Source: Rebecca billardiae RCC1528
Lineage: Eukaryota; Protista; Haptophyta
Reading direction: 5' to 3'
DNA length: 64,000 nucleotides
Assembly: GCA_965240325.2 (NCBI GenBank)
Contig: OZ251229.1
Span: 62,001-126,000, forward strand
Part shown: piece by piece, positions 12,467 to 48,820 of the stretch
Numbering within the stretch: the first letter of the stretch is position 1
Layout of the letters: each line of letters opens with the position of its first letter
Program-made: the position numbers and the translations under genes
Notes under the pieces: model-generated
What the model was told of the DNA's origin: nothing
Seen by the model: only the letters and a program-made list of their open reading frames with translations
The model's database searches: none

Positions 12467-12760
12467 GAGTCTTGTATGCGGGTAGCGGCGCGGGACCTCT
12501 GTGTGACGAAAGATTTTAATCTCGCTCGTCTATTACAACTCTATGGGGGTATACAGAGTATACTTCTACTACTACCCCCATACGGTGATGCAGTATGACG
12601 AGATAGATCGGCAAAGCGAGACGATCTGATGCAAAAGGATGCAAAAGACCGGGTCCGAAAGCTCCGAAGCAGTTTTTTTCTAGCTATTATTTGAGGCCAC
12701 GCCGTTACGCTCGTCGGCGCGGCTCATTCCGGCGGCACGCGGCGCGCGCGCGGGCCGCGC

Positions 12761-15700: not shown

Positions 15701-17909
15701 GGCGCGCACGCTCGCCTCGTCGGCGAGCGCGACGCGCGGCGCGCGCCGCCCCGCGCCGGGCGCGGAGAGGCGCACGCGCCCGCCCGCGCCGCCGCCGCCC
15801 TGCGGCGCGCCGCCCAGCCCGCCCGCCGCATGCACCGCCGCCGCGCGGTCGAGCGAGATCGAGTCCCGCGCGCACAGCCAGACCGAGCCGCCCGCGCCGC
15901 CGCCGCCCGCGCCGTCCGCGCCGTACGTGCCCTCGCCGGGCTGGCCGTCGGCGGAGACGGTGGCGCCGGCGAGCTCGATCCGCACCGACGCGTTGAGGTG
16001 CACGACGCCGCCGCCCGCGCCGCCGAGCGGCGCGCCGCCGCCCGAGCCGGGCAGTGCGGGCGCGTCGCCGCAGCCGTACGCGCGCCCGCCCGGCGCGGCG
16101 CGCGCCGTGCCGTTGGGCCCGCCGCCCGCGCCGCCCGCGCCGCCCGCGCCGCCGTGCCCGCCGCCGCCGCCGCCGCGCCGCGCCGCCGCGAGCGCCGCGC
16201 CGCCGCCGCCGCCCGCGGGCGGCGGCGCGCCGCCCGCGCCCGGCCCGCGCTGCGCGCCGCAGCCGAGGTTGGACGCGCTCACCAGCCCGCCGCCCTCGAT
16301 CGAGGCGGCGCACAGCAGCACGGACGAGCCGGAGACGACCGTCGACTCCTCGAGGCCGAGCTGCGTGCGCACCTTGAGCTGCACCGCGTACGCCAGCCCG
16401 CCCGCGTCGACGAGCTCGCAGTCGGGCGTGTAGCGCGCGCCGCCCTCCGCGTCGGGCGCGCAGCCGTCGCGCTCGGCGCGCGTCGCCTCCACCTTGCCGC
16501 GCAGCACGGCGGCGCGCGCGACGAGCGTGATGGTCTCGCCGAGCACGAGGCCGAGCGTCTTGAGCAGCACGTACCCCGCCTCGAGCACCATCGGCCCCGC
16601 GCTCACCAGCCTGCCCCCCAGCCGCAGCGCCCCCGCCGCGCGCACCACGACCTCGTCGGCGAGCAGCTGGCTGGCCTCGTCGAGCGACACGTCCTCGCCG
16701 TCGAGCAGCAGCCGCGCGGCCTGCATGGTCGAGCCCTGCGAGAGGCGGATCTCGCGCGCGGAGACGAGCACGCGCGGGAAGGACGGCGGCGGCCGGCCGT
16801 GCGTGCTCGGCGCGTAGTGCTCGCCGTACAGCAGCCCGCCCACCAGCTGGATCGACGAGGCCGCGCGCACGCACGGCGCGGACGCGGGGCCCGCGCCGAG
16901 CGCCGCGCCCGCGCGCACGACGATCGAGTCGAGCGCGCTCGAGGCGCCGAGCGAGCACGTGCCGCCCGCCTCGGCCCAGCCGTTCGCGCACACCACGCGG
17001 CGGCAGCCGCTGTAGAACACCGTCCCCGCCCCGCCCGCGAAGCAGTTTGGCGACGAGCCGCCGCCGGACACGTCGACGCCCACGGACGCGCCGCGCTCGG
17101 CGGCCGAGGAGGAGGGCGCGCGCTCGCAGCCGGGCAGCTCGACGCGCCCGCCGCCGCCGCCGCCGTACGCGCCGTCGGCGGCGCTCGAGCCGTTCCCGCC
17201 GCCGGCGAGGACCACGCCGCTCCCGTTCAGCGCCGCCGCCGCCGCCGCCGTGTGCCGCGCGCCCTCGCGGCGCGCGGGCGGCGCCGTCTGCTGCAGCACC
17301 ACCGTGCCGCCGCTGCCGCCGCCCACCGGCACGGCGCCCGCCGACGCGCCCGCGGCCTCGAGCACGCCGTCGAGCTGCACGCGCTCGCGCACGCGCACGC
17401 GCACGACCCCGCCCCCGCGCGCCGCGCGCGCGCGCTCGAAGAGCGGCGCGCTCGTCCGGCCGGAGCCAAAGCCTGCGGGCGCGGACGCGGCGCCGTACGG
17501 CAGGCCGCCCGCGTTGTACCCGAGGCAGGAGCCGCCCGTGCCGCCGTGCCCCGCGCCCTGGAGGTGCCGGTCGCCGAGCACGTCGTGCGGCGAGTCCGCC
17601 CGCCCCATGCCGCTCGCCGTCACGCGCGCGCCCGCGGGCACGAGCAGCGCGTCCGCGCTCAGGCTCAGGTTGCCGCCGCGCACGGCCGCGCCGCCCTCGA
17701 GCTCGATCGAGCCGGAGGCGCACGCGAGCGCGAAGGCGCACATCGGCTCGGTGCAGCCGATCTCGACGCCCGCCGCCACGCGCACCCCGCCCTCGAGCGC
17801 CACCTCCGCGCCCTCGCGCGTGAGGCGCGTGCGGTTGACGAGGCAGACGAGCGCCAAAGCGCCCGTCTCGTTGAGCAACGCGTCGCACAGGGCGGGGAGC
17901 GGCGGCGAG

Positions 17910-17957
<48 letters not shown>

Positions 17958-18043
17958 GAGGGCGCGGGCGCGCTCGCGACCGCCGCGACGGCGGCCAGCA
18001 GCACCGCGGCGCAGCCCAGGCGGGCGGGCGCGGCCGCCGGCAT
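12761..18043 (-). CDS. Large Gly-rich, Cys-repeat (GCC2/GCC3, ephrin-receptor-like) multi-pass membrane protein resembling the plant At5g11700/At4g32920 family
   Basis: ATG 18043 with signal peptide, GAGHGG/GGGSGG repeats, tandem CAPCAPG repeats, a TM helix, cytosolic SHVARVYLRGTNEPRAPW and several C-terminal TM helices; about 1760 aa. Confidence 0.78.
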
Positions 18044-18182
18044 CCCCTTGTGTGTCGCAAGTGCGTGCCGTGGACGGGGGACGGAGGGCCTTCTCGGGCT
18101 TCTCCCGTGACGACTGTTCAGCGACCCGCCACCCCCGGCACCGGTCGCAACCACCCCGACCGGCCCCTTGCTCGACGGAACG

Positions 18183-19577
18183 ATGGCGGCCGGCAAGCTG
18201 GAGGTTGCGCCGGGGGAGTTTCCGCCGTGGCTGCAAGAGCGCGACGGCAAGCTGGTCTGCGCGCGGTGCGACGTGTGCGTGGTGGCCACCGGGAAGGGGA
18301 TCAAGCAGCACCTCAAGTCCAAGTCGCACAAGCTCCTGCCCAAGGGAGCGCCGGAGCAGCCGGGCGGGGCGTCGGCGCCGGAGGCAAACGGGCCGCGCGC
18401 GCGGTCGCGCGCGTCGGCGCGCGGCGCGCGTGCGCTGTCGGACGACGACGAGACGCTGCAGGAGCTCGCGCGACTGCTCGGCGCCGGCGAGGCGGAGCTC
18501 GGCGCGGGCGCGCGCGCGCGCCTGCCCGAGTACGCGGCCGCGCTCGACGCGTTCCGCGCGGTCGCCCCGTGTGCGCGCGCGTGCCTGCTGCCGCCCCTCC
18601 TGCGCAACCCGCGGCGCGAGTGCCCGGCGCTCGACCGGCCGTTCGTCACGGCGCAGGTCGGCTCGATCCCCGAGCTGCCGGAGAGCCTCGACGACGCCCT
18701 CCGCGCCTACTTCTCCGGCGTGCGCGGGCGCCACCCGAAGGTGGACGTGTGCGAGCGCGCCGTGGCCGTGCACTCGTGGGCGGACGCGCGCCGCGCGCTC
18801 GAGGCGGCCGACGCGGCGGGCTCGCGCTACTGGTGCACGCTCTTCTGCGCGGAGATGGGGCACCCGCCGTGGTGGCCGCGCGACGCCAAGGGCCCGCGCG
18901 GCGTCGGCGAGGGCGCCACCTCCGTCCCGTTCTTCGACCAGATCATCCTCGGGCGCGGCGCCGTGGGCATCGGCCTGCACGCAGACACGTACGCGCCGCA
19001 CGCCGCGCCCGTCTCCACGTGCCTCACGCTGCTGCGCGGGCGGAAGCGCGTGCTCATGCTGCCGCCGAGCACGGGCGACGGCCGCAGCACCTGCCACTGG
19101 CTCGTCGGCGAGCCGTTCCCGCACGACCCGCCGGCCGCGCTGCTCGCGCGCATCGCGTCCGTGGGCGGGTACTGGTTTGAGCTGCAGGTGGCGCCCGGCG
19201 CGGACCCGCTCGCCTTCTTCACGCCCGCGGGCTGGTTCCACTGGCTCGTCGGCGACACGTGCCACGCGCCGGACTGCGCGCCCGACGGCTGCGCGCCGGG
19301 CTGCAGCGACTGGCACGTCGCGTTTGGCGGCAGCTTCTTCCCGCGCGCCGCGCTCGCGCGCGGGCACGCGCTGCCAGCGCGCCGAGCCGCTGAGCCGGAG
19401 CAGTGCCAGCGCGACCGGTACGCCGACGTTGGAGGCGGGGCCGCGCCCTCGGCCAACGCCTGCGCGGGCTGCGCCGATGCGGGCGATGGGGAGGAGGACG
19501 AGGGGTGCCGCCGGTCGGAGTCGGACGCGGGCGGCAGCGCCGCGTCCGGCGTGACGCAGGCCCTGGTCCTGGAGTGA
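18183..19577 (+). CDS. JmjC/cupin Fe(II)-2OG oxygenase-like protein with N-terminal zinc finger
   Basis: CARC...HLKSKSH (U1/matrin-type C2H2), IGLHADT, LLRGRKRVLMLPP and FTPAGWFHW supply the HxD...H triad. Confidence 0.8.
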   Translation: MAAGKLEVAPGEFPPWLQERDGKLVCARCDVCVVATGKGIKQHLKSKSHKLLPKGAPEQPGGASAPEANGPRARSRASARGARALSDDDETLQELARLLGAGEAELGAGARARLPEYAAALDAFRAVAPCARACLLPPLLRNPRRECPALDRPFVTAQVGSIPELPESLDDALRAYFSGVRGRHPKVDVCERAVAVHSWADARRALEAADAAGSRYWCTLFCAEMGHPPWWPRDAKGPRGVGEGATSVPFFDQIILGRGAVGIGLHADTYAPHAAPVSTCLTLLRGRKRVLMLPPSTGDGRSTCHWLVGEPFPHDPPAALLARIASVGGYWFELQVAPGADPLAFFTPAGWFHWLVGDTCHAPDCAPDGCAPGCSDWHVAFGGSFFPRAALARGHALPARRAAEPEQCQRDRYADVGGGAAPSANACAGCADAGDGEEDEGCRRSESDAGGSAASGVTQALVLE

Positions 19578-22501: not shown

Positions 22502-22940
22502 GGTCGGCGCGTGGATGCGCAATCAGCGCCTGCTGTCGTCGGCTGTCGAAGTCGATCCGCTCGACGGCCGTGCGCTGACAAAAAATCCAAAAATCCCTGC
22601 GGGCGCGAGAATGCATTCGCGTCTTCGTTGTCATCGCGATGCTATGACGAATCGGCGTCGCGAATTCTACATGCTGAAAGAATGAATTCTGACGATACGA
22701 TTTCTGGCTGATGATCTGCCAGAACGTGAGAGTCGCGATCTCGAGCCCGCCGTCCGCGGCGTCGGCGGACGGTCGGAGCCATCATTGGCAGGCTTCCGCG
22801 CGGCTGGGACCAGAGTACCAGTGTCACGGACGATGCGCAACCACTAACCAGAGCCCCCGACGAGTGGCGTATCATCACCCGTCGGCTTCCCCGTCACGGA
22901 CACAGCTGCCGCTGGTTGAGCTCGGCCGACTTGCGTCGAC

Positions 22941-23994
22941 GGAGGCCACTCGAGCGACTTCGTGTCAGGCGAGGCAGATCGCGCCAGTGCGAGGCGAGGC
23001 AGACGCTCGCCTGCCTCGCCTCGAGGCGAGGCAGCTAAGCTAGTAAAGCCGCGGCCGAACTTTACGAAAGCCAAATGTCTGCCGAGGCGCCGCCGGTCTT
23101 CGCGCACGGTGACAAGGGCGCGCGAGGGCGCTTCCTCACGATCCCGAAGAGCGCTGCGCGCGGCGTCGCGTTGGCGGCGGCAGCGGCGCTTGGGTGTATC
23201 TTGCCCATTCTGCGTGGCGGCGCGCGCTCATGACGCCTCGGCCGCCGCCACGCCATGCGCGACCAGGCGTGTCGCCTTCTTGACGGGCAGTGCACACGCC
23301 CTTGCAACCGCACAGCCGTGAAGAGCCGAGAGCGTCCGTCGCGAGCACGCCGCCCACGCGGGATGCGTTGTCAGGACTATTCGTATGACACTGGGTGTTC
23401 ACGCTCTGGCATGTGCAAGCCACGATGACCATGGGTAGCAGCTACGACGAGCAATGCTCACCTGCATTTCAGCCGATGACAACCTCTCGTTCAGCGATCT
23501 TGACTGCACTGAACGCATGGCGAACTCGGCGGAGCGCATGCGCAAGGTAGCTTCGTTGATATCACAACGCATCCCGCGTGGGCGGCGTGCTCGCGACGGA
23601 CGCTCTCGGCTCTTCACGGCTGTGCGGTTGCAAGGGCGTGTGCACTGCCCGTCAAGAAGGCGACACGCCTGGTCGCGCACGGCGTGGCGGCGGCCGAGGC
23701 GTCATGAGCGCGCGCCGCCACGCAGAATGGGCAAGATACACCCAAGCGCCGCTGCCGCCGCCAACGCGACGCCGCGCGCAGCGCTCTTCGGGATCGTGAG
23801 GAAGCGCCCTCGCGCGCCCTTGTCACCGTGCGCGAAGACCGGCGGCACCTCGGCAGACATTTGGCTTCCGTAAAGTTCGGCCGCGGCTTTACTAGCTTAG
23901 CTGCCTCGCCTCGAGGCGAGGCAGGCGAGCGTCTGCCTCGCCTCGCACTGGCGCGATCTGCCTCGCCTGACACGAAGTCGCTCGAGCGGCCTCC
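22941..23994. mobile_element. Foldback/MITE-like element with ~431-bp inverted arms and 192-bp spacer
   Basis: 22941-23371 is the reverse complement of 23564-23994 with about four substitutions seen; GG...CC termini; GAC on both outer sides. Confidence 0.85.
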
Positions 23995-24189
23995 GACGGT
24001 GTGAGGCCCGCGGCGGCGGGCCCCGCCGCCTGAACTGTGAGCAGCTGTCGGAGTGGCCGATCAGCAGGGCGGCAGCAGCCGCAGCCGTGGGCTCAAGCGC
24101 GCGTTGGGCGTGGCACGCCGAGCGTCGCCAGCGCGCGCTCCCCCCGCGCCCCGCCCGGCCGCTCGCCCAGCCTCGAGCGCGGCGTGCGC

Positions 24190-24367
24190 GCTCACTGCCA
24201 AGGCAGCTCACTGCCACGGCAGCTCACTGCCACGGCAGCTCACTGCCACGGCAGCTCACTGCCACGGCAGCTCACTGCCACGGCAGCTCACTGCCACGGC
24301 AGCTCACTGCCACGGCAGCTCACTGCCACGGCAGCTCACTGCCACGGCAGCTCACTGCCACGGCAGC
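24190..24367. repeat. 16-bp minisatellite (GGCAGCTCACTGCCAC), about 11 copies
   Basis: Read directly; the period is confirmed by 16-aa periodicity in overlapping ORF translations. Overlaps the NDUFA13 stop codon. Confidence 0.95.
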
Positions 24368-24887: not shown

Positions 24888-25151
24888 GCTCCTGCCGAAC
24901 GCCCCTTGTGTCCGGCGACGCCGCGCAGGCCGCCCCTGAGCTCCTCGACGCGGCTGAGCTCGAGCTCTTGATCAGGCGTCAAGGGCCGAGGAGGCACCGC
25001 CGACCGAGGATGGAGGGTCCGGGGACCGGGAGCGCCGGACTTCAAAAGGTCCAACTCCCGGACTGCACGGCCGAGTGTCTGTTGCGCGTGGGCGTCTCCG
25101 AGCGCACGCGCGGCCGCTCGTCGCGCGTCGGCGGACCACGCGGCGCGCGCG

Positions 25152-26186
25152 ATGGTGCAGGCCGCCTTCGCGCGGCTCGCCCCGTCCCACCCGCACGACA
25201 GCGCGTTCGGGCGCGGCGAGCAGCACCCGATCTTCCACCAGCCCAACACGGGGCACGTGCTGAGCAGGCCGCACTCCAAGCTCGGCCCGACCAGCTTCGC
25301 GGACGCGCACATGGTGCCGATGGGCAGCACGCGCGGCCGCGCGGGCGCGACGACGCTCGACCGCTTCGCCCGCACCTACCAGGACCGCGTCGCGCCGCCG
25401 CCCGGCCCCGCGGCCTACAGCCCGCACCTGCCCTCGCAGTTTGACGTCGCGGGCAGGGGGCGGCCTTCGAGCTCGCACACGCTCGCGCGCCGCGCGTTCG
25501 CGGAGGAGATGCGCGCGCAGCAGCGCGCGAAGCGGCCGCACACCGCGCCGCCGGGCGGCCACGCCCGCGCCGCCCCGGCCGCGCCCCGCCCCGCCCGGCC
25601 GCGCCCGCGCAGCGCGTACCGCCGGGGTGTGCGCATGGAGCCCACGGCGGCGCCCTCGCCCACGCGGTACGCGCCGCTGCCCCGGCCCGACGTCGTCAAC
25701 GTGGCGGGCGCGCCCGCGCTGCTCGCCAGCCGGCACGACGTGGACGTGCGCAACGTGCTGCACGCCTCGCGCGCCGCCAGCCCGCACAGCCTCCCCGCGC
25801 CGCGCACGTACGGCGTGCCGCGCGCGGCCGTGCGGCCCGTCACGCCCGAGCTGCACCGCGTGGCGAGCGCGCCCCTGCGGACGGACTACGCGGGGCGGCC
25901 GCCGCCCGCGCGCGCGAGGGTGGGGGTCGGGCGGCCGCAGACGGCGCCCGTGCTGCTGCGGATGGCGCAAGCTCGAGCAGTCGCGCCGCTGCCGCTGCCG
26001 CCGCGCGCGACGAGCGCCGGGCCCGCGCCGGCGCGCACGGTCGGAGGCAGCACGCTCGCGCACGCTTGGACGCACGCTTGCACGCAGAGCAGCGGCGGCA
26101 GCGGCGCAGCCCGCGCCCACGCCAGGCCGAGTCTGGCGGAGAGCCCGTCGGTCGCGACGGCGATGCTGTCGCGGACATCCTCATAG
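25152..26186 (+). CDS. Hypothetical basic Pro/Arg-rich protein, possibly ciliary (PGP.AY motif)
   Basis: 344 aa ATG ORF with GC3-biased codons, PPPGPAAYSP and repeated RPxTA/RPxSA motifs. Confidence 0.55.
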   Translation: MVQAAFARLAPSHPHDSAFGRGEQHPIFHQPNTGHVLSRPHSKLGPTSFADAHMVPMGSTRGRAGATTLDRFARTYQDRVAPPPGPAAYSPHLPSQFDVAGRGRPSSSHTLARRAFAEEMRAQQRAKRPHTAPPGGHARAAPAAPRPARPRPRSAYRRGVRMEPTAAPSPTRYAPLPRPDVVNVAGAPALLASRHDVDVRNVLHASRAASPHSLPAPRTYGVPRAAVRPVTPELHRVASAPLRTDYAGRPPPARARVGVGRPQTAPVLLRMAQARAVAPLPLPPRATSAGPAPARTVGGSTLAHAWTHACTQSSGGSGAARAHARPSLAESPSVATAMLSRTSS

Positions 26187-26682
26187 CGCGCGGCGTGCGC
26201 GCACCCTGCAGCATCGGTACTCTGCCAGTGGCAGCGCCATGCAGCGCGACCGGCCGGGGCCCTGCCTCGCGCGCCGGCGCCTGCTGCTCGGCGGCCGCTT
26301 CGAACGGCGGCCGGCGCCACGGGTTCGACGCCTGGCGAACAGGTCCACACGGCGTGGGCTTTATTGGCGTACGGCGCTGTGACCTGCTGACGAGTGCTAC
26401 CGACTCCGGCCGTGTATTCGAAGTCGATCCGGTACGAGTATACCGTCCGTCGGCCGCCGGCGCAGACGCGACCGGGCGACTGCTGACGACCGGACACTGA
26501 CGTCACGTGCACTTCAATGACGCTCCGTCAGTCCGTCGCCGTCGCCGTCGGCGTCGGTCGTCGTCGATCTCGGTCGTGCTGGCTGCGTTATTGCCTATTG
26601 GCAGGCCGGCAGCACTATGCAGCAGCGGCTCAGCCGGGCACCGGCACTCGGTCGGATCGCGGAGCCGACTAGGCACTCACTA

Positions 26683-28401
26683 TAGGGGGGCCAAAGTGGC
26701 ACTGTAGCGTTACTGACGGCCACGAGCGCGGGTCCTAGCGAGTGTTTAGAGCTGATTTCGGGCTGGATCATTTGCCCTCTGGAGGGGTCTGGGCCGGCCA
26801 TGTAAAAAAACCAGGTGCACATACCCTGAATATATAGGGCGTAACGGCTAGCATATTTACTTATTAGAATGAGCCTGAACTTATTGGAAACGGTATGTAA
26901 CGGTCGTCCTATATGTGACATATAGACCATGTCGACCTCACTTTGATAGAGCATCTCAGCGAGATCGATCTGAGTCCCCAGCAGCAGCAGGTCCCAACAT
27001 GCGATATAGGCTGTGTACTGGCAGGCTGTCAAATATGTAGTTTCCTAGAAGCCACCGATCGTTACATACCCACTGTGTATATAGGCGCCATGCTGATGAA
27101 TACAGCCTCGTCTGATCTCGAGCTGCGAGATACGTTTTCAGACTGTGTATACAGCCACGCGTACGGCGTATTGCAGACATAGTAGACCCAAAGCACCGGC
27201 CCCACGTCCTTAGCCCGGGAGTGCTCTCGGTCATAGTCAAGGTTTAAAGTGACTCGAGCCAACCGTCACCGCTCCCTGGCCGAGACCTACGAGGCAGGTC
27301 AAATCTGTCGTCGTCGCAGTGCGGCACAGTGCCGAGCATGCGATTCGGCAGCAAACGTCTGCTCCAGGCGGTGGCTGGCGTGTCTGCACCAAACCAGGCT
27401 GGATGGGATTGGTCCATATAGGTACGCACTACCCTGTTCCGCGCTATTTCTGGGCTTAGGGGCGGATATTCGGCCTACAGAGGCTGATCCGGCGCTGTTC
27501 GGCGCTCCTGGCTGGCTGCGCGGAGCCCACCGGCAAGCGCCGGCGTGTGCAAGGTGTCAAGATTGAGACGGTCTCTGACGCTCCCGCCGGTCTTGGGCGC
27601 ACCAGGGTGCATGAGGGCCCATCTGCATCTGCTTCTGCAGGCACGAGCGTCACAGGGGCGCGCTTGCAGGCACGGTCGAGTGCACGTCGGACCTGTCGAA
27701 TGAGCCAACCGCTGCCTGCGAGCACGTCCGCGACGTCCTGAGAGGCGAATGGGAGGCGCCCAGACGCCATCAGAGGGCACACGTGACCCATACCCAACGT
27801 ACTGACCATCGCAAGTGCCACGGCAGGTGCAAACACGGGCCCTACAAGCGGAACATGACAGTTGCGAGCTCCGCGGAGGTGTTGCGCGCGAGCTCGCGCC
27901 GGTCTGCTGACGGCGATTCCGGCGCAGCAGGGCAGGTTAGGCGAGCTGGGCATCCACATACATACATGGGCACTTGGTGCGAGCATCGATCTCAACTGTG
28001 CGAGTTGATCATGAGCCACACCGTGCGGTAGCGTGACGGGCGCACGCAGCGCGCCAATTCAAGCCGGCCGACGCGCGCCGCGCACGGCGCGAGATGGCCA
28101 AGAAGCGGGTGGTGAGCCGCTGGTGGCGCAAAGGCACGGGTCAGTAGCGCCCACCAGCGTCACGCGCGCGCGCACCCGAGACCATCTCGGCGTCTCAAAG
28201 GTCGCGAGCGCGCGGCGGTCCACTGCCTCCGGCCGCTCGCGCTGGAGCGGAACCGAGCTCTGAGCGTCCGAAGGCGTCGGAGCTCGATTTTCGAGCGGGG
28301 TCCGAGAAAAAGGCTCCGCGCCACCCTAAAAGGCCGAGGGCGGAGCGAAAATGCGACGCGACTTTGCTTTTCATTTTTAAATGGGCGGTTTGGCCCCCCT
28401 A
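26683..28401. mobile_element. Non-autonomous TIR DNA transposon with 13-bp TIR and 7-bp TSD
   Basis: Left end TAGGGGGGCCAAA, right end TTTGGCCCCCCTA; CTCACTA directly flanks both ends (26676-26682 and 28402-28408); lower-GC interior without an intact ORF. Confidence 0.85.
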
Positions 28402-28989
28402 CTCACTAGGCCCGTCACTGTACGGTCACTAGTCGCACTGGCCAGTGACTGGCCGCGCGGATCTGCGGAATAATGCATATCGCGCGCCATATTCACTACT
28501 GTTAATGATCTATATGATAATAGTACTAGCTACACTCTCCATGAAGCCTGCCGTAGAGGTATCATGATGTGATGTGACTTCACTACTGAGTCTACTCACT
28601 AGCCAGTACATATCAGTACTCATTTACATTAGTCCGCGCTGCGCGGACCGGGCTCGCTGCTGCTAAGAATCAGCCAGCAGCCCGCAAACTGCGATCGATG
28701 ATGATATCATCAGCAGCATGGCCATCATGTCGTGACGATGACTAGTTCGTCACGACACGACGAGTCCATCGGTCTATCCTGCCATTTTTGCAGGAATCTG
28801 GAGTTTCCAGGAAGAGTGCGGGAAGCTGTAAGTGGGCGCGCACGCGCGCGCGCTCTGATTGGCCGACGTGACACGCCCGATTCCTCGTCATCCCTAGCTG
28901 TTGAGCGGTGCAGTCGGGCCCACCCGACCACGGCCGCCGTGCTGGCGGGCGGCACCCGACCACGGCCGCTGTGCTTGGCGGGCCACCTG

Positions 28990-29200
28990 ACCGCCCGACC
29001 CGACCCGACTACCCGACTGCCAGTGCCACGCCGCGCCAAGACCCCCCCCCCCCACCCGACCGCCCGACCCGACCCGACCGCCCGACTGCCACGCCGGTCC
29101 GGGGCTAGTCCGGACCAGCCCGGGCCATGGCCGCCGGGCGCCGCGCCAAGACCCCCCCCCGACCCGACCCGACCACCCGACTGCCTCGGACTGCCACGCC
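28990..29200 (-). repeat. About one inverted copy of the 185-bp G-tract satellite unit
   Basis: CCGACCCGACC, GCCAAGA-Cn and GGGGCTAGTCCGG are reverse complements of the 31375-32560 array motifs. Confidence 0.85.
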
Positions 29201-29209
29201 CGGCCGCCC

Positions 29210-30550
29210 GTGCTACCACCGGCCGGGGCAAATCGCGCGCGCGCCGGCGGCGACGAGCCGTGCACCCACGAGATTGTGTTCCTCCGCGACGCCGACGGCC
29301 ACAGGGTGGGCGGTCGGCTGCACGTGCCGAGCGCCTCTCTGCCGCGGCTGGACGCGCTCGTCGCGTCGTCGTACGCGCTGCTTGGCGCGCGCGCGCCCAT
29401 GGTCGTCGAGACGTTCGGCGCGCGCGCGCGGTTCGGCGTCGACGTGGATCTGCGCTTCTCCCGCATGCCCTCGTACGACGCCCTCGCCGCGCTGCTCGTC
29501 GACCTCTACGACGCGGCAGACGCTGCGTTCCACGGCGTGCCCCGTCCCGCGCGCGGCCACGCCGTGCACGTCTCGGCGCGCGCGGCGACGCCCTCGCGCC
29601 CCGGGGTCGCCGCGGACGACGCCGGCCTGTTCCGCGCGGGCCTGCACGCCACCTGGGGCGACAGTGCGGTCCTGAGCTCCTCGGAGGCGCAGCGCGTCGC
29701 GCGGGAGCTGGACGTGCGGCTGCAGGCGAGCCCTGTGCGCGCCCTCTTTGCCAAGGCCGAGGTCGATGGGTCGATCTACCGCTCCGGCTTGCGCTTGCCG
29801 TTCACGGCCAAGGCGGACGGCGGCCCGCCCTACCTGCCCGCCGCCGTCGTCGCTGCCGACGGCTCGGGCGTCGTGCGCTGCGCCTGGCTCTCGGCGCTGC
29901 CGGCCGGGCACGCCCTGCGGCAGCGCTGCGAGCCGGCGCGTTGGCTCGCGCTGACGCGGCTGCGCACCGAGCGCTTCGAGTTCGCCGCGAGCGCCGCGGC
30001 GGGCAGCGCCCGCCCCGGCGCGCCGGCGGCGGCGCGGCGTGCGCCGCCGTGCCCGCCGCCCCACCCGCAGGCGCCGCTCTGCGCGCGCGCCGCGGGGCGC
30101 GGCGCGCTCGTCGCGTGGCTCAACGCGCAGCTCGACGCGCACGCGGCCGGCGCAGGCGACGCCGGGCACTGGCCGCGCGTCCAGCGGGTGTACGCAGGGA
30201 GCACGCCGCACGGCCGCATCGCGACGTGCTCGACCACGAGCAGGTGGTGCGAGCGCAAGCGCGGCGAGCATGCGAGCAGGACCGTCTACTACGTCGCCAA
30301 CGCCGACGGCATGGACCTGTGCTGCGGTGATCCCGTGTGCGTCGCCGCTGCTGGCGGCCGGCGCGGCGCGCGCGCCGTTCGCCTCCGGGGGCTACCGTAC
30401 CGCCATCTGCCCAGCGGCGCGTGCGCGCGCGGGTGCTGCGGCCCCGCGCAGCAGCCCGCCCGTGAGGCCGGCTGCGGCACCGCCGCGGCGCTGCCCGCCC
30501 CTGGCCAGACGTTTGCGGCGCTCTGCTCCGACGCCTTCGGCGGAACTTAG
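29210..30550 (+). CDS. Archaeo-eukaryotic primase (AEP) / PrimPol of the NCLDV-herpesvirus clade with C-terminal UL52-like Zn ribbon; start uncertain
   Basis: TH...GGRLHVP N-terminus, motif I RFGVDVD, motif II GLH, motif III DGSIYRSGLRLPFTAK, and SRWC...H.SRTVYY...CCGDPVC; intronless. First in-frame ATG is 29399. Confidence 0.8.
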   Translation: MLPPAGANRARAGGDEPCTHEIVFLRDADGHRVGGRLHVPSASLPRLDALVASSYALLGARAPMVVETFGARARFGVDVDLRFSRMPSYDALAALLVDLYDAADAAFHGVPRPARGHAVHVSARAATPSRPGVAADDAGLFRAGLHATWGDSAVLSSSEAQRVARELDVRLQASPVRALFAKAEVDGSIYRSGLRLPFTAKADGGPPYLPAAVVAADGSGVVRCAWLSALPAGHALRQRCEPARWLALTRLRTERFEFAASAAAGSARPGAPAAARRAPPCPPPHPQAPLCARAAGRGALVAWLNAQLDAHAAGAGDAGHWPRVQRVYAGSTPHGRIATCSTTSRWCERKRGEHASRTVYYVANADGMDLCCGDPVCVAAAGGRRGARAVRLRGLPYRHLPSGACARGCCGPAQQPAREAGCGTAAALPAPGQTFAALCSDAFGGT

Positions 30551-30807
30551 CTGCTGCAGCTAGCTGCTCGGCCGCCGCCACTTGTTAATGTTAGTCTGAG
30601 TTTAGAGTTAGGACGACGACGCGGCAATCAATAACTGTAACAGTCGCGTATCGGTCAGAATGCATCCTCAGCACACAGTGGTCAGTGCGGACGGGCAGAC
30701 GACGTCAGCATTATTATAATATATTCAGAATTATACATATCGGAGTTGGAAGCTGCGCGGCTGAGCGGTCGAACGCCTACGTGCCCACGCTGATGCGCGC
30801 CGGCGCC

Positions 30808-31340
30808 CCCACGCCCCCATTTGTCCACCCGGACAAGGCGCGCGCACGGCGCGGCGGGCAGTCACGGTTGGCTCAGCCGGGCGGGCCGCTCGTGCGCGGC
30901 GCATCGACCCGTCTCCTCGCGCTCGGCGCCGCCCGCAGCGTGCGCGTCCGGCCACGCGCGCCGCGGTCGCGCGGCGAGCGCGCTGGCGACCGAGGGCGTC
31001 GGCCGCGCGACGGCGCGCGCGCGCGCGCCACGCCCCCATTTGTCCACCCGGCGCGGCGCGCGCGCGCGCGCGGGGCCCGCGCGCGCGGCCAAGGTCGTCA
31101 GCCGCGCGACGGCGCGCGCGCGCGCGCCACGCCCCCATTTGTCCACCCGGCGCGGCGCGCGCGCTGCGCGGCGCGGCGACCCGTCCGTCCTCGCGCTGCG
31201 CCGCCCGCGGCGTGCGCACCCGGCCACGCGCGCCGCGGTCGCGCGGCGAGCGCGCTGGCGACCGAGGTCGTCGGCCGCGCGACGGCGCGCGCGCGCGCGC
31301 CACGCCCCCATGTGTCCACCCGGCGCGGCGCGCGCGCGTT
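30808..31340 (+). repeat. Irregular direct repeats (ACGCCCCCATTTGTCCACCCGG core), four copies
   Basis: Core at about 30811, 31030, 31129 and 31302, with shared CCGCGCGACGGCGCGCGCG flanks. Confidence 0.85.
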
Positions 31341-31374
31341 GTGCCCCGGCCGGGCGGCCGGGGCGTGGCCCCGA

Positions 31375-32560
31375 GTCGGGCAGTCGGGTCGGGTCGGGCG
31401 GTCGGGTGGGGGGGGGGGGTCTTGGCGCGGCGCGGCGCGGCGGCCATGGCCCGGACTGGTCCGGACTAGCCCCGGACTGGCGTGGCAGCCCCGGACTGGC
31501 ATGGCAGTCGGGCAGTCGGGTCGGGTCGGGCGGTCGGGTGGGGGGGGGGGGTCTTGGCGCGGCGTGGCACTGGCAGTCGGGCGGTCGGGTCGGGTCGGGC
31601 GGTCCGGGGTGGGGGGCCGGGGGGGTCTTGGCGCGGCGGCGGCGGCGGCGGCCATGGCCCGGACTGGCCCGGACTAGCCCCGGACTGGCGTGGCAGTCGG
31701 GCGGTCGGGTCGGGTCGGGCGGTCGGGTGGGGGGGGGGGGTCTTGGCGCGGCGTGGCACTGGCAGTCGGGCGGTCGGGTCGGGTCGGGCGGTCGGGTGGG
31801 GGGCGGGGGGTCTTGGCGCGGCGGCGGCGCGGCGGCCATGGCCCGGACTGGCCCGGACTAGCCCCGGACTGGCGTGGCAGTCGGGCGGTCGGGTCGGGTC
31901 GGGCGGTCGGGTGGGGGGGGGGGGGTCTTGGCGCGGCGTGGCACTGGCAGTCGGGCGGTCGGGTCGGGTCGGGCGGTCGGGTGGGGGGGGGGGGGGGTCT
32001 TGGCGCGGCGGCGGCGCGGCGGCCATGGCCCGGACTGGCCCGGACTAGCCCCGGACTGGCGTGGCAGTCGGGCGGTCGGGTCGGGTCGGGCGGTCGGGTG
32101 GGGGGGGGGGGGTCTTGGCGCGGCGTGGCACTGGCAGTCGGGCGGTCGGGTCGGGTCGGGCGGTCGGGTGGGGGGGGGGGGTCTTGGCGCGGCGGCGGCG
32201 CGGCGGCCATGGCCCGGACTGGCCCGGACTAGCCCCGGACTGGCGTGGCAGTCGGGCGGTCGGGTCGGGTCGGGCGGTCGGGTGGGGGGGGGGGGGTCTT
32301 GGCGCGGCGTGGCACTGGCAGTCGGGCGGTCGGGTCGGGTCGGGCGGTCGGGTGGGGGGGGGGTCTTGGCGCGGCGGCGGCGCGGCGGCCATGGCCCGGA
32401 CTGGCCCGGACTAGCCCCGGACTGGCGTGGCAGTCGGGCGGTCGGGTCGGGTCGGGCGGTCGGGTGGGGGGGGGGGGTCTTGGCGCGGCGTGGCACTGGC
32501 AGTCGGGCGGTCGGGTCGGGTCGGGCGGTCGGGTGGGGGGGGGGGTCTTGGCGCGGCGGC
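31375..32560 (+). repeat. Higher-order tandem array, ~185-bp unit, about 6.4 copies, strongly G-skewed
   Basis: GGCCATGGCCCGGACTGG recurs at about 31442, 31650, 31835, 32021, 32205 and 32387. Each unit has two GGCAGTCGGGCGGTCGGGTCGGGTCGGGCGGTCGGGT-Gn-TCTTGGCGCGGCG subunits with variable G-tract length. Confidence 0.95.
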
Positions 32561-32654
32561 GGCGGGCGGCCGCCGCCAGCGGCGGCAGCTGGCGGCGCCG
32601 CGGCGCGGCGGCGCGCGCGCGGACCGTCGCTGACTATACAGAGGAATCAAACAG

Positions 32655-34592
32655 TAGCCTGGTCCAAACGCACTGGAGCACTTTCGGGGATTTTATCGCC
32701 AAATGAATGCGGGCCCCTAGGCACGCGCTCACACCCGGAAACAGCGTAACAAATGGGCCCAGCCCGGGCGGAGCAAAAGTTTCGGCCTAAAAATCGCATC
32801 CGCGGCCCGTCGTGAGCGTGCGCGCGCGCGCCGCGGACAACTACGGACACATAGAGAATCGTCAGTCTGAAGGTGGGTAAGTACTTAACCGAAATGAGCC
32901 CAAACGCACGAACTTACTTATTGGCGTACGTCGAGGCGAGCATGAACCTTGGTACAGGCCATTAGGATGGGCTGTGGTCTGTGCGCAAGTGGCCGTACTC
33001 AACTACTGCAAGATCGACAATATTACCCATTTGTACCCGCATAATATGGGCAGTGTACCCGCATAAATATGCGGTCTGGACCTGTATAATTACAATGCCA
33101 CTATGTCGTTACATATTCGCCATAGGTGGGTAGCTGTCCCAGGCTGCACGATTAGTGCGGCGCGCGGGGTGCATTGGTCGGAAGAGGCTCCGCCTGGCCT
33201 TCCGCGCACTCCTGCAGACAAGAAGAGGGCCGGACTCCCACCCGGCCAGGCGTGCGGCAGTCGGTCAGGTGCTGGACCTGGTCTGGAGACCATCTCCTGC
33301 GTGGCGACTGGCCGATATGCGGCACAACGCGCGCCGCCGTGAGCCACACGGCAGGTTCGCAACGGATCCGGTTCGCGTGTCCATGGCGGCGTGCATCGAG
33401 TCATTCAAGCTGTCAAGTCGCGTGCCACGCCCGCCCTTTCACTTGGGGCATCAGTACTGCCTACAACGACGACATGTGCGTCCTTAGATGAGGCATAATC
33501 GCGATTCTAGCTGCCCGTCCAAGGGTCAGATCGCACGTCTTTGCTCGCCCGACAGCCTCAACGGCGGACTGATGTGATCCGCGGGTGACGATGCGACCGC
33601 TTTGAGTGCGCCTACGGCCACCACCGGGGTGGGGATCGTTCATGGGCACCCTCCGCGTGCCATGACATGCTCTGGCCGTGCGTGGTGACATGGCCCACCG
33701 CGCGTAAACGGGAAAGACACCCGAGCACGTGCTTCCGAGCCACCCGAATGGCACAATGTGCCACCCATGGACACCAAACAGGCGCCAGAGCGCAAGCCTT
33801 GCGTGCTGGAGTAGCTGCACGGCACCAAGGAAGACGTATGAGCGCTCTCAACCATCTTCAAGCGACGACTCCGTCGACTCTGCCTCGCAGACCGCGGTAC
33901 GATCCTCGACCTTGTGCTCGCAGCAAAGGCCATGACGGTAAAGCAGCACCCATGCGATGGGAGTCAGCCGGCAGCCACCACACTGCGACTGTACACACCC
34001 AGCCCCGCAAGGCGAGCCATCCTGCTCGCCACCAGCCCGTCATACAGCTCCACGAGGAGCACAAATCGACAGCCGCCGCTCAGGACGACCCATGCGCGAA
34101 CGTGACGGGACTGGCCGGATGAAGCGTTGGCGATGCGCAGCGCGCCCAACGCTGGTGGTGGCATCGAATACATGCTAGGGGTAGGCGGTGGCCGACACGA
34201 GCCGTCGCGTGGCCCGCATATTACCCGAGGTGGCCCGTCTCGAACGCGCGGCGCAACCCAGCAGGTGAGCGTTCGACGCACGCCGTCGGGCAAGAAGTCG
34301 ACCTGGCGACGGACCGCGGGCGGCGGAAGCAACGCAGACATGTCGCTCAAGGTGTGCACGCACACCACCGGGGCACCCGAACGATGTGTCCAGCACTACA
34401 CCTGACATGAGGCGGCGCAGTCGTCCAGTCGAGGCTCTCGAGCCCCTTCCGACCTTCGTCGCGGCGAGCCGTCGGACGGCCGGTGGCGATTTTTGACGAG
34501 CGCGACGAGCAACGAGAAAAATCGGGAGAAATGAGGCGCCCAAAATCCGAAAAAGGCTTTTTCACTGGCGAAAATCGAGATGGACCAGGCTA
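32655..34592. mobile_element. Nested non-autonomous TIR transposon with 12-bp TIR and 7-bp TSD
   Basis: Left TAGCCTGGTCCA, right TGGACCAGGCTA; CAAACAG at 32648-32654 and 34593-34599. Confidence 0.88.
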
Positions 34593-34877
34593 CAAACAGT
34601 GTCGTGCACACTATGGGCAGCCGGTGACTTCCGGGACATGTCCCTACAGAGGGGTAGAAAGCCGCTCAGCCTGGGTATCTGGGGGGTCGCCCCTATGGGC
34701 CCCCTAGGGGCAGGGGGGGAGGGTGCCGTGACACTACAGATTCCTGCAAAAATCACAGGGTACACCAGTCCATCACGGCATATCTAGCAGCGCGCAGACG
34801 AGTGGCAGCGCAGCGCTCCGCGGAGGCGCTGCGCGGGGCTGGCGGCGAGGTCACGCAGCGCCGCCCCACGCATGCGC

Positions 34878-36419
34878 TCAGCCGAGCTGCTGCGCCACCG
34901 CGCCCCCCGCCGCCTCGCCCTCCGCGGCCGGCGCCGCTGCCGCCCCCTGCGCCGCTGCCGCCCCCTGCGCCTCGGCCTCGGCCTCGGCCGTGAGCGCGTG
35001 GACGGCGCGCGCGAGGATCTCCGCGGCGCGGTCGACCTCGGCGGCGGTGGTGTGCCGGCCGACGGAGAGGCGCAGCGTGCCGCGCGCGTACTCCGCGGGC
35101 ACCTTGAGCTCGCCGAGCACGCCCGACACCTTGACCGCCTCCGCCGAGTGGCACGCCGCGCCCGCGGACGCGGCCAGCTCGTGCGCCACGCGCGCGAGCA
35201 CCGCGGCGCCGCGCACGCCGCGCACGCCCACGCTCAGCACGTTGGGCAGAGACGGCCACGCGCCGAGCGCGTCGTCGGGGCCGAAGGCGAGCGGCGAGTT
35301 GACGCGCAGCCGCGCCTTGCCCAGCCGCGCCTCGAGCGCCTCGAGCAGCCGGTCGCGCATCGCCGCGGCGTGCTGCGCGATCGCCCCGCCCTGCTCGTTC
35401 CACACGCGCGCCGCCTCGCCCAGCCCCGCGAGCAGAGGCACGCTCTCGGTGCCCGCGCGCCGCCCGCGCTCCTGCCCGCCGCCGTGGAGCATGTTGGGCA
35501 GCGCGAGGCCCTTGCGCACGTACAGCGCGGCCACGCCCTTCGGCGCGCCGAACTTGTGCCCGACGAGCGTGAGCATGTCCACCTCGAGCTCGGGCGCGGA
35601 GACGGCCACCTTGCCCACGGACTGCGCAGCGTCCGTGTGCACGAGCGCGCGCGGGCACGCGGCGCGCACGGCGCGCGCGATCGCGCCGATGGGCTGGACG
35701 GTGCCCACCTCGTTGTTGGCGTGCATGATCGTGACCAGCGCCGTCTGCGGGCGCAGCGCGCGCGCCACCTCCTCCGGGCTCACGCGCCCCCACCCGTCCA
35801 CGCCGACGCGCGTGACGGTCGCGCGGCCCGCCGCCTCGAGCGCGTCGCAGCACGCGAGGATGGCCGGGTGCTCGATGGTCGAGGTGACGACGTGCGGCGT
35901 CTCGCGCGGGCCGAGCCGCGCGCGCGCGAGCTCGACCGCGCCCACGATCGCCCAGTTGTCCGACTCCGAGCCGCACGACGTGAACACCACCTCCTCCGCG
36001 CCGCACTCGAGCAGCTGCGCGACGGCGGCGCGCGCGCGCTCGACCGCCGCCTTGGTCTGCACGCCGTACGCGTGCGGCGAGGAGGGGTTGCCCCACTGCA
36101 CGCTGAAGTACGGGGCCATCGCGTCGGCCACGTCGGGGTAGATCGGGCACGTCGCCGCGTAGTCCATGTACACGCAGTCCTCCGCGCCCGGCGTCGGCGG
36201 CAGCGGCGAGCCGACCGCGCGCCGAGCGACCGCGGGCGCCGGCACTGGCGTGGGCGCCGCGCCCGCGGCGCTCGCGCGGATGGCGCCGCCGCCTCGCGAG
36301 AGCGGGCGCAGGCCCAGCCGCGCGCGCGTGGGCACGGCCGCGCCGAGCAGCGCGCGCACGGGCGAGAGCGCGTACGCGGCGGCGCTGAGCATGAGGCGGA
36401 GCACGCGCGAGGCCGACAT
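34878..36419 (-). CDS. Group I PLP-dependent cysteine desulfurase / selenocysteine lyase-like (NifS-type) enzyme with organellar presequence
   Basis: YMDYAATCP, WGNPSS, FTSCGSESDN, IEHPAI, MHANNEVG, HTDAAQSVGK, VGHKFGAPKG, GGGQERGRRAGTE and SAGAACHS. Confidence 0.92.
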   Translation of the reverse strand: MSASRVLRLMLSAAAYALSPVRALLGAAVPTRARLGLRPLSRGGGAIRASAAGAAPTPVPAPAVARRAVGSPLPPTPGAEDCVYMDYAATCPIYPDVADAMAPYFSVQWGNPSSPHAYGVQTKAAVERARAAVAQLLECGAEEVVFTSCGSESDNWAIVGAVELARARLGPRETPHVVTSTIEHPAILACCDALEAAGRATVTRVGVDGWGRVSPEEVARALRPQTALVTIMHANNEVGTVQPIGAIARAVRAACPRALVHTDAAQSVGKVAVSAPELEVDMLTLVGHKFGAPKGVAALYVRKGLALPNMLHGGGQERGRRAGTESVPLLAGLGEAARVWNEQGGAIAQHAAAMRDRLLEALEARLGKARLRVNSPLAFGPDDALGAWPSLPNVLSVGVRGVRGAAVLARVAHELAASAGAACHSAEAVKVSGVLGELKVPAEYARGTLRLSVGRHTTAAEVDRAAEILARAVHALTAEAEAEAQGAAAAQGAAAAPAAEGEAAGGAVAQQLG

Positions 36420-36682: not shown

Positions 36683-37714
36683 TCAGCGCTCGCCCGCGCC
36701 GCCGCGCGTGCGCGGGTCGTCAGTGCCGGGCGCGGGCGGCACGAGCGTGCCCCCGCTGCGCAGCTCGACGAGCGCGGCGGCGCCGCTGAGCAGCGACTTG
36801 GCGAGCCACACGGCCGGGCTCCGCCCCTGCCCCGCCGCCGTCACCGCGGCGTACGCGCCGATCGCGCCGTGAGCCGCCACCACCGTCGCGGCCGCCAGCT
36901 GCAAGTACTCGCGCGCCTCGCCCAGCTGAGCGGCCGGGCGCGGCCCGAACGCGCCCGCGACCAGCCACGCGGCGAAGAGGGCGTTGAGGCGCTGCGGCGT
37001 GGAGAGCTGCACGTCGACGAGCATCTGCTTCTGCGGCAGCTCCTCGTTCGGGTCGCGCTCGGGCGCGGGCGGCTTGACCAGCCCGGCGAGCTTGCTGCGC
37101 GCCGCCTCTCGCGCCTGCTGCTGCCCGGCGCGCGCCGAGCCGGGCGGCGGCGGCAGCTGCGAGAGCTTCTGCACCTCGAGCACGTCCTCGGTGGCGCGGC
37201 GCGCGTTGCCGAGCTTGAGGAAGCCGCTCTGGTCGGCCTTGCGCCAGTCCCAGTTGTCCACCTCCTCGAGCGGCGGCCGCTCCGGCGCGCGCTTGGGCAG
37301 CTTCCAGCGCACGCCCAGCCGCTTGGAGAGCGAGATGTACCCGCCCAGCTCGAGCACCGCGCGCGCCAGGTCGTCGCGGCCCCTGCGCGAGAGCTCGGTG
37401 TACGAGAGCGGGGGTGGGAGGGACGCGTCCGATAGCTCGTCCGCGGGCAGCTCCGCCAGGTACGCGCGCAGCTCCGGCTCGAGCTGCTCGACCGTCTCGA
37501 AGGCGGGCGGCTTCTTGGCCATCATCGTCAGCGCGCGCGCGCAGCCGCGCGCAGCCGCGCGCCGAGCCGAGCTGGGGCGCGCGGCGCGCGCGACAGACAG
37601 CGGCGGCGGCATCGCGGCGGCGACGCAGACGCCCACGGCCGACGCGCCCGCGCGCCCCGCGAGCACAGCCGCGAGCGTCGCGAGCAGCGGCGCGGCGCGT
37701 GCGGCCGGCGCCAT
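36683..37714 (-). CDS. Hypothetical plastid-targeted membrane protein
   Basis: ATG 37714 with signal and transit peptide; ELSRRGRDDLARAVLELGGYISLSKRLG helical motif; hydrophobic C-terminal helices. Confidence 0.7.
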   Translation of the reverse strand: MAPAARAAPLLATLAAVLAGRAGASAVGVCVAAAMPPPLSVARAARPSSARRAAARGCARALTMMAKKPPAFETVEQLEPELRAYLAELPADELSDASLPPPLSYTELSRRGRDDLARAVLELGGYISLSKRLGVRWKLPKRAPERPPLEEVDNWDWRKADQSGFLKLGNARRATEDVLEVQKLSQLPPPPGSARAGQQQAREAARSKLAGLVKPPAPERDPNEELPQKQMLVDVQLSTPQRLNALFAAWLVAGAFGPRPAAQLGEAREYLQLAAATVVAAHGAIGAYAAVTAAGQGRSPAVWLAKSLLSGAAALVELRSGGTLVPPAPGTDDPRTRGGAGER

Positions 37715-37852
37715 CCTTGCACCGACCGTCGGATGACAGGTCGAGCCGCCGCCGAGCCGCGTGGCCCGGTACGGCGTCCGTCCGAGTGTTTCTTCAACTG
37801 CGCCGCGTCCGCGTGGTGGCGCGTTGCCCCGATTCACAGCAGTACAGTAGCA

Positions 37853-38347
37853 ATGGCGACGATGCGGCGTGGGCGTCAACGCATCCGCGCGACCGGCCCA
37901 TATGGCCGCGCTGAGCCCGCCGGCGCGGGGCCCGGCGCGTGGGAGGCGGACCCGCGGCTCGAGCCCACACTCCGTGCGCTCGCGCTCGAGCTCACCGCCG
38001 CGGCGCCCGGCCAGTCCATCAGCGCAGCCGAGCTGGGCGACAAGATCACGACCGCGCTCAAGCGCAAGGGGGTGCACCCCAAGCGCGACGGCAAGATTGG
38101 GAAGCTCTCGCTCTACATGCGCGTGCGCCATGGCGGCTGGACGTCCTACCTCGCGCAGCTCGCGCTGCCCGGGCTGAGGTACGACGCCGCCACGCAGACG
38201 CTCGCCGCCATGCAGCGCGGCTCCGAATTGGCGAGCGGGGGCGCGAGTGGCGCCGATGCCGCTGGGCCTCGGCTGGGCTCTGCGCCGCGCGCACGATCAG
38301 CATCGTGCGCCCCAGATGTCGACGAGCTGGACCTCTCGAAGCTCTGA
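37853..38347 (+). CDS. Small basic hypothetical protein, possible winged-helix
   Basis: ATG 37853 with coding-like codon usage; ISAAELG...YMRVRHGGWTSYL resembles a winged-helix/LOTUS pattern. Confidence 0.55.
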   Translation: MATMRRGRQRIRATGPYGRAEPAGAGPGAWEADPRLEPTLRALALELTAAAPGQSISAAELGDKITTALKRKGVHPKRDGKIGKLSLYMRVRHGGWTSYLAQLALPGLRYDAATQTLAAMQRGSELASGGASGADAAGPRLGSAPRARSASCAPDVDELDLSKL

Positions 38348-48578: not shown

Positions 48579-48820
48579 GGCTCCAACGAGCTCGCGTTGC
48601 CACGTGCGCCAAGCCGCCAACAGGCCTTGCCCAGCGAGTGACAGAATATGGGGCGCCGCAGTCCGGTGGCTGGCTCGGGTCCGGGGTTTGCTCAAGAACT
48701 TGTGGCGCAGATTTCGTCAGCTCTCTCCTTTTGCGAAGCGCCAAGCGGCCAAGGCCGGATCTGACGACGCCGGCCGCCGCCCATTCGCTCGCGGCGGGCC
48801 AACCGGCGCGCGCGCTCGCC

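Follow-up and report, generated by a model that had tools for sequence, protein, structure and literature searches.

The AEP reading frame and its predicted product

A stretch of 64,000 nucleotides from Rebecca billardiae RCC1528 (contig OZ251229.1, positions 62,001 to 126,000), hereafter referred to as the window, carries an open reading frame (ORF) whose predicted product resembles archaeo-eukaryotic primases (AEP) of giant viruses. This AEP homologue is the sole recognisable gene of a 5,996-bp element that is bounded by terminal inverted repeats (TIRs). The window, with a GC content of 63–86%, contains long uninterrupted ORFs with GC at third codon positions (GC3) of 0.91–0.98. According to Pfam, their products are ordinary eukaryotic proteins: GATase/chorismate-binding, BART, inositol monophosphatase (Inositol_P), class-V aminotransferase (Aminotran_5), SET, protein kinase (Pkinase), a 3,353-residue ATG2-like protein and HMG/SAP. 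Since such long, intron-poor ORFs encode ordinary eukaryotic proteins, the window is GC-rich, intron-poor eukaryotic nuclear DNA. Coordinates of the AEP ORF and of the surrounding features are collected in Table 1.

A sequence-only reading of the window had reported three AEP catalytic motifs and a C-terminal zinc ribbon in this ORF. Translation and a check of positions confirmed the motifs: FGVDVD (motif I, 29432–29449, residues 75–80), GLH (motif II, 29639–29647) and DGSIYRSGLRLPFTAK (motif III, 29765–29812). The cysteine/histidine cluster was also found, with predicted zinc ligands C347, H354, C372 and C377 encoded at 30248–30340 and spaced C-x6-H-x17-C-x4-C, but it is a CHC2 finger of the UL52/PrimPol type and not a classical ribbon. 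The architecture is that of an AEP catalytic domain with a DxD...H...D active site, followed by a low-complexity linker and the CHC2 finger. In an alignment of 20 family sequences, every invariant or near-invariant column is retained by the window ORF: T19, H20, G35, H38, V39, P40, V66, E67, D78, D80, H146, D186, Y190, G193, R195, K201, Y208, P210, C347, H354, C372 and C377. Within the family, 15 of 15 sequences have D78 and D80, 16 of 16 have H146, and 18 of 18 have D186, Y190, G193 and R195; the columns of the four zinc ligands are kept in 19–20 of 19–20. Judging by sequence conservation, the AEP motifs of the window ORF are not chance look-alikes.

The ORF itself gave no match in Pfam, PHROGs, PDB sequences or a word-indexed protein search. 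In particular, hmmscan revealed no Pfam match at E ≤ 1, neither to AEP_C962R nor to Herpes_UL52. These blanks reflect divergence and composition, not lack of homology. An exhaustive HMMER search of 1.84 billion proteins revealed eight relatives at E ≤ 1e-3, the best matches being at 1e-37 and 6e-33. Six of the eight come from short GC-rich contigs; the other two, P0007 and P0008, are encoded on giant-virus contigs, where they adjoin capsid genes of nucleocytoplasmic large DNA viruses (NCLDVs). Three relatives match Pfam family AEP_C962R (PF23162, cut-off 23 bits): P0008 at 7.6e-25 (88.7 bits), P0007 at 1.5e-13 (51.8 bits) and P0004 at 3.4e-6 (27.8 bits). P0007 also matches, barely, the zinc finger of Herpes_UL52 (PF03121; 21.4 bits at a cut-off of 21), and P0008 matches PPL4. 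A profile search against the two families, which the sequence-only reading had envisaged, thus fails with the window ORF but succeeds with its relatives. The link of the ORF to AEP_C962R is transitive and consists of HMMER matches to the relatives and an hhalign comparison between groups. In the latter, 273 columns of the GC-rich group (A5) and the viral group (A4) were aligned, running from the N-terminal block (TH...LHVP) to the zinc finger, at 99.2% probability and an E-value of 7.7e-20. When the family profile was compared with the PDB, motifs I–III aligned with the AEP domain of poxvirus OPG117, at a weak E-value of 0.076.

The viral relatives are 24–32% identical to the window ORF. A relative encoded on the contig pair L008/L009 (P0001) is 45% identical. 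Scans of IMG/VR with the ORF and with the high-GC alignment gave nothing, and the window's AEP is missing from a 15-billion-protein collection, whereas a neighbouring host protein is present there. On five giant-virus contigs (L001, L002, L003, L012 and L013) the gene order is capsid, NUDIX, small ORF, AEP, DUF5832, cap methyltransferase, WLM. Such a conserved block suggests that the gene is stable and single-copy in that viral lineage. The Pfam families found on the contigs of the viral relatives are ones that we take to be typical of phycodnaviruses and prasinoviruses.

A structure was predicted by AlphaFold2 with the 20-sequence alignment. The mean predicted local distance difference test score (pLDDT) was 72 and, the alignment being shallow, the model is only moderately secure; a single-sequence model (pLDDT 37) was useless. 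D78 and D80 are located on strand E76–83, H146 on E141–148 and D186 on E182–186. The best Foldseek matches in the PDB were to the Prim/Pol domain of AsfvPrimPol (8iqb/8iqc, E-values 6e-7 to 1e-6, target TM-score 0.61–0.66), followed by HSV-1 UL52, which aligned across both domains. In BFVD, the C962R-like and D5-like primases of many giant viruses were matched, together with those of fish, frog and mollusc herpesviruses. The top matches (AsfvPrimPol, HSV-1 UL52 and NCLDV primases) all had a probability of 1.00. An AEP fold was thus returned; the lack of one, which the sequence-only reading had named as a refutation, did not materialise. The earlier view that the gene is a viral-type AEP is borne out by the Pfam matches of the relatives, the hhalign comparison and the matches of the model. 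On the strength of sequence and model, the ORF encodes a genuine standalone primase-polymerase of the NCLDV/herpesvirus-type AEP clade.

GC content at codon positions 1, 2 and 3 of the AEP ORF is 0.78, 0.64 and 0.92, which is the pattern of the identified genes of the window. The codon adaptation index (CAI) with host weights is 0.63, compared to 0.63–0.78 for host genes and 0.23–0.40 for other open frames of the same DNA. The coding signal of the ORF is real, and the host-like high GC ascribed to it earlier was found. The absence of stops, also pointed out earlier, holds for all 446 codons; as evidence of intactness it carries little weight, because at 78% GC the same DNA is also open in three of its five other frames, for 358–541 codons.

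The claim that the gene is intact is not supported by its 5′ end. The stop-to-stop frame that contains the ORF spans 28991–30547 and the listed ORF begins with GTG; no in-frame ATG is present in the stretch from the upstream stop to the conserved N-terminal block. The first in-frame ATG, at 29399, is directly ahead of motif I. It matches a conserved internal methionine of relative P0002, and a start there would drop the first two strands and the first helix of the AlphaFold model. A non-AUG start or an upstream exon could initiate the ORF. No intron was predicted by any tool and none is assumed. Directly past the stop codon there is an AT-rich stretch; a similar drop in GC trails many host genes in the window. 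TGTAA was considered as a poly(A) signal and dropped, since other genes of the window do not show it.

A polymorphic transposon-type insertion

The protein encoded by the neighbouring Aminotran_5 gene (34878–36419, minus strand), a cysteine-desulfurase-like host gene, is encoded without a residue changed on two independent Logan contigs, L006 (ERR14847151) and L007 (ERR14847148). Both contigs match the window from 37791 to 34764 at 99.8% and then go straight into 28770–28637 at 100%; they end at 28637, inside a low-GC stretch (26200–28770). Position 28770 is thereby connected to 34775 with a single copy of the octamer AGTCCATC, i.e., the site is empty. In the window the octamer is present at both ends of the intervening DNA as a target-site duplication (TSD), and the TIRs abut it on both sides. 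The 17-nt core of the TIRs, ATTTTTGCAGGAATCTG, occurs in the window only at 28784–28800 (plus strand) and 34737–34753 (minus strand), with none expected by chance. The junction on L006 and L007 was also considered as a spliced intron; this was ruled out, because no GT...AG is available within the 8-bp ambiguity and the TIRs abut the repeat. The empty site, the TSD and the abutting TIRs make 28771–34766 a transposon-type insertion that is polymorphic between the genome of the window and those read sets. The presence of the host neighbour, but not of the window's AEP, in the protein collection fits with this. It is located ~105 nt downstream of the stop codon of the Aminotran_5 gene. Since the allelic site is empty in two read sets, the AEP-bearing locus is dispensable.

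Table 1. Features of the AEP-bearing insertion and its borders (window coordinates)
Feature	Position	Strand	Remarks
Left target-site duplication copy	28763-28770		8 bp, AGTCCATC; direct repeat at both ends
TIR-bounded insertion, polymorphic	28771-34766		5,996 bp; empty-site contigs and alignment of ends
Left terminal inverted repeat	28771-28800	+	~30 nt, 26/30 paired with right end
Left repeat arm	28983-29246	+	264 nt, ~1.4 units of a 184-bp repeat; self-BLAST, inverted-repeat search
AEP primase-polymerase homologue	29210-30550	+	446 codons plus stop; no internal stops
AEP catalytic domain	29258-29965	+	Residues ~17-252; motifs I-III inside
UL52/PrimPol-type CHC2 zinc-finger domain	30173-30397	+	Residues ~322-396; family conservation, Pfam match of a relative, Foldseek
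AT-rich stretch	30560-30760		GC 0.44-0.52, directly past the AEP stop codon
Four same-strand copies of 23-nt motif CACGCCCCCATTTGTCCACCCGG	30810-31323	+	Within 99-nt repeats
Right repeat array	31359-32571	-	~6.5 units of 184 bp, inverted relative to left arm
Right-hand interior	32572-34736		2.2 kb, GC ~0.6, without recognisable gene
Right terminal inverted repeat	34737-34766	-	Alignment of ends
Right target-site duplication copy	34767-34774		8 bp, AGTCCATC; direct repeat at both ends

Inside the insertion, the AEP gene is placed between two inverted tandem arrays of the same repeat. The left arm, separated from the left TIR by 212 nt, is 82–96% identical to the right array and overlaps the first 12 codons of the AEP ORF. 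Tandem Repeats Finder gave a period of 184, 6.0 copies and 97% matches for the right array. On the plus strand the left arm is C-rich (GC skew −0.33) and the right array G-rich (GC skew +0.38), so that the G-rich strand points outward on both sides of the AEP gene. The 23-nt motif CACGCCCCCATTTGTCCACCCGG has four matches compared to none expected, and is found nowhere else in the window. A Pfam search with the ten longest interior ORFs revealed no family, transposase included. Because the longest ORFs of the insertion include no transposase, the element is non-autonomous at best.

A motif related to the 23-mer was found with a relative of the gene. The AEP fragment on L008/L009 is flanked by a (GC)n run that continues into GCCCCATTTTTCCAC, and motifs of this type are absent from the rest of the window and from the other loci examined. 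One comparison revealed no non-coding sequence in common between the element and the other AEP paralogues. The 5′ end of L008 is unreliable: its positions 1–25 resemble an adapter, presumably from the sequencing library by the look of it, and are followed by 100 nt of AT-rich DNA.

The missing ATG is the one defect of the window copy, which has no internal stops and no frameshifts relative to the family (a single tblastn frame to L004, an intact relative with an ATG start). Other relatives are in a poorer state. L005, which comes from the same run as L006, and L009 each contain at least one frameshift; in L010 (ERR14847149) there are several, and its four segments are spread over four frames; the 5′ part of the AEP is missing from L008. 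Frameshifts are also present in the diverged paralogues P0004 and P0003, whose run series is the one that yielded the empty-site contigs. Broken copies have a lower GC3 (0.76–0.79) and a lower CAI (0.38–0.43).

The sequence-only reading had supposed that the gene possibly remains under selection, unlike neighbouring transposons. The contrast does not hold, since the gene itself is part of a TIR- and TSD-bounded 6-kb insertion missing from two read sets. Nor does the ratio of nonsynonymous to synonymous substitution (dN/dS) lend support to selection. Third codon positions are 48–51% identical to those of L004, L008 and L010, which is the random level for a position occupied by G or C only. Since synonymous sites are saturated relative to all relatives, dN/dS is uninformative and present selection cannot be inferred from it; the paralogues of the same run series are, as described above, frameshifted. 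About 20 invariant residues are kept at 55–60% divergence from the nearest relative, which suggests past constraint somewhere on the lineage.

Nature of the AEP-bearing element

The AEP gene may belong to, or ride on, a recently mobile selfish element, rather than being a fixed host gene; we put the probability of this at about one half. What leads to it is that the family is tiny and patchy, that members from the same run series are diverged and decaying, that the locus is dispensable, that inverted arrays of opposite GC skew flank the gene, that the window's AEP is missing from the protein collection and that a related non-coding motif accompanies the gene. The AEP would then be part of a selfish-DNA lineage resident in GC-rich eukaryotes, which would go back to the standalone AEP gene of prasinovirus-like giant viruses or to a common ancestor with it. 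Because no transposase was found in the element, its integration would be performed in trans by an enzyme encoded elsewhere. The protein, if made in full, would bind a single-stranded template via its zinc finger and would start and extend primers at a metal site of three acidic residues, with priming plausibly taking place on the element's own repeat arrays. Since no in-frame AUG precedes the conserved N-terminal strands, the window copy may be silent or may have been disabled recently, and a young insertion, instead of selection, may account for its clean frame. A regular association of AEP and element, if true, would connect the replication genes of giant viruses to cellular transposons in small algae, and would give a new and very rare protein family (eight relatives in 1.84 billion) a biological context.

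Several results weigh against a selfish element. A word search of called proteins with a 151-aa ORF from the right-hand interior revealed no relatives, and no integrase or transposase partner was identified. No second copy of the TIR ends is present within the window. A scan of JGI metagenomes with the TIR pattern returned one match only (L011, 2155–2177), which was put down to chance, since it is on a contig of 47% GC that is otherwise dissimilar to the window. These TIR ends are therefore not shown to define a multi-copy family, and one copy of the element is known; the contigs of the relatives are all too short to reveal TIRs around another AEP. The read sets with the empty site may represent another strain, another haplotype or the same culture. 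The motif common to the element and L008/L009 could be a dispersed repeat unrelated to the AEP, and the host-like codon usage also fits a long-resident host gene that was captured later.

Passive capture is the main rival. A non-autonomous cut-and-paste transposon would have taken up a resident, formerly viral AEP by transduplication; the AEP would play no role in the life of the element and the arrays would be ordinary satellite DNA. We regard this as a tentative alternative, though a serious one. Such an origin is in keeping with the lack of a transposase in the element, with codon usage as host-like as that of true host genes and with the other AEP paralogues, which have no non-coding sequence in common with the element. 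The repeat arm that overlies the 5′ end of the ORF and the missing in-frame ATG are likewise as expected of a captured, non-functional piece. What a mere passenger does not readily account for is the presence of all conserved domains in one frame with their own AT-rich 3′ region, the symmetrical placement of the arrays around the AEP gene, and the related repeated motif that travels with the 45%-identical relative on L008/L009. Even if capture is all that happened, the locus provides a clean and dated case of recent insertion polymorphism, by which an entire virus-derived gene is moved around a compact genome.

An anciently acquired viral PrimPol could instead serve the host under purifying selection, e.g., in repriming of stalled forks. 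All catalytic residues and zinc ligands are indeed kept although the nearest relative is 55–60% divergent, both GC3 and CAI resemble those of host genes, and L004 carries an intact, ATG-initiated relative. Yet the locus is missing at the allelic site in two read sets and so dispensable, it is located within TIR/TSD bounds, its conserved N-terminus is not preceded by an in-frame ATG and its paralogues are decayed; besides, a family as rare as eight members in 1.84 billion proteins is unlike a conserved host function. We consider domestication unlikely overall: it is possible for the family's past and unsupported for the window copy. That the insertion is a remnant of an integrated giant virus is very improbable, even though the most distant relatives adjoin capsid genes on giant-virus contigs. 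No other viral gene is present in the insertion or within 20 kb, and the insertion is merely 6 kb long with transposon-type ends. Its composition is host-like, as opposed to GC3 0.60 and CAI 0.24 of the viral homologue. An endogenous giant-virus fragment was rejected, the neighbours being ordinary eukaryotic genes (Inositol_P, Aminotran_5, SET, Pkinase and ATG2).

A more far-reaching version of the selfish-element proposal, which we find rather unlikely, would make the inner module a minimal replicon. The outward G-rich inverted arrays, the 23-nt iteron-like motif and the standalone viral-type PrimPol would together constitute an undescribed form of eukaryotic selfish DNA, in which the AEP primes on its own repeats. 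Such DNA would be kin to the satellites of giant viruses (transpovirons) and would spread inside transposon ends or during giant-virus infection.

Many mobile elements of bacteria and archaea are replicated by PrimPol-type AEPs, which giant viruses also have as a core gene. The element resembles transpovirons, polinton-like viruses, virophages and prokaryotic PrimPol-replicase elements in small size, inverted repeats, a primase-type gene and giant-virus kinship. It differs from them in that no capsid, packaging ATPase, helicase, polymerase B or integrase was found in it by Pfam, that it is integrated with transposon-type ends and that no free form is known. With non-autonomous TIR DNA transposons, including Pack-type ones, it has in common short imperfect TIRs, an 8-bp TSD, a precise empty site and the lack of a transposase of its own among the genes found. 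TSDs of 8 bp are seen with hAT, P, Merlin, Zisupton, Novosib and some Mutator elements. The element thus has the hallmarks of a class II transposon, with a TSD that fits several superfamilies and does not allow assignment to one. Unlike in such transposons, the passenger is a complete viral-type replication gene between inverted tandem arrays. A literature search of limited extent revealed no eukaryotic TIR element defined by an AEP gene, nor a passenger flanked by arrays in this way.

At the protein level, the standalone AEPs of prasinovirus-like viruses (the P0008/P0007 group, ~350–420 aa, AEP_C962R plus PPL4) are of the same length class and have the same two-module architecture. They differ in that their genes sit between capsid/NUDIX and cap-methyltransferase genes and have a GC3 of 0.60, whereas the window gene, at 24–32% identity, has a GC3 of 0.92 and is part of a transposon-like insertion in cellular DNA. 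The N-terminal Prim/Pol domain of African swine fever virus C962R (AsfvPrimPol) has the same fold, and motifs I–III align with the AEP domain of poxvirus D5/OPG117; compared to C962R and D5, the window protein has no D5_N or SF3 helicase part, a UL52-type finger replacing the helicase C-terminus. Herpesvirus UL52 and eukaryotic PrimPol (CCDC111) likewise consist of an AEP domain and then a C-H-C-C zinc finger, but the window protein is far smaller than UL52 and there is no helicase partner nearby. CCDC111 was not returned by PDB sequence or profile searches, and the Foldseek matches listed do not include it. These results do not support orthology to cellular PrimPol; the locus is, moreover, presence/absence polymorphic.

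Other features of the window

Directly left of the insertion, 26200–28770 is a stretch of ~2.5 kb with 44–70% GC and without a credible ORF, which could be either intergenic DNA of the host or the decayed remains of an older repeat. An Rfam scan of the whole window gave no match. Four long ORFs have the host coding signature: 10445–12529 (minus strand, 695 aa), 12764–18706 (minus strand, 1,981 aa), 24972–26183 (plus strand, 404 aa) and 36686–38296 (minus strand, 537 aa). Pfam revealed no family for the 695-, 404- and 537-aa products; the sole match of the 1,981-aa product, Ephrin_rec_like, is below threshold (18.9 bits at a cut-off of 23.1). All four are lineage-specific or very divergent proteins.

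A foldback-type structure is present at 22937–23998, with two 435-nt arms that are 99% complementary and a 192-nt spacer; a quick look at its ends showed no obvious target duplication. At 24190–24367 there is a microsatellite consisting of 11 copies of the 16-nt unit GCTCACTGCCACGGCA at 99% identity. The ATG2-like protein is encoded by an uninterrupted ORF of 3,353 codons at 47909–57967 (plus strand, GC3 0.94), which combines an ATG2 C-terminal region with a VPS13-like N-terminus. The DNA around it reaches 86% GC, illustrating the intron-poor, GC-extreme character of this genome.

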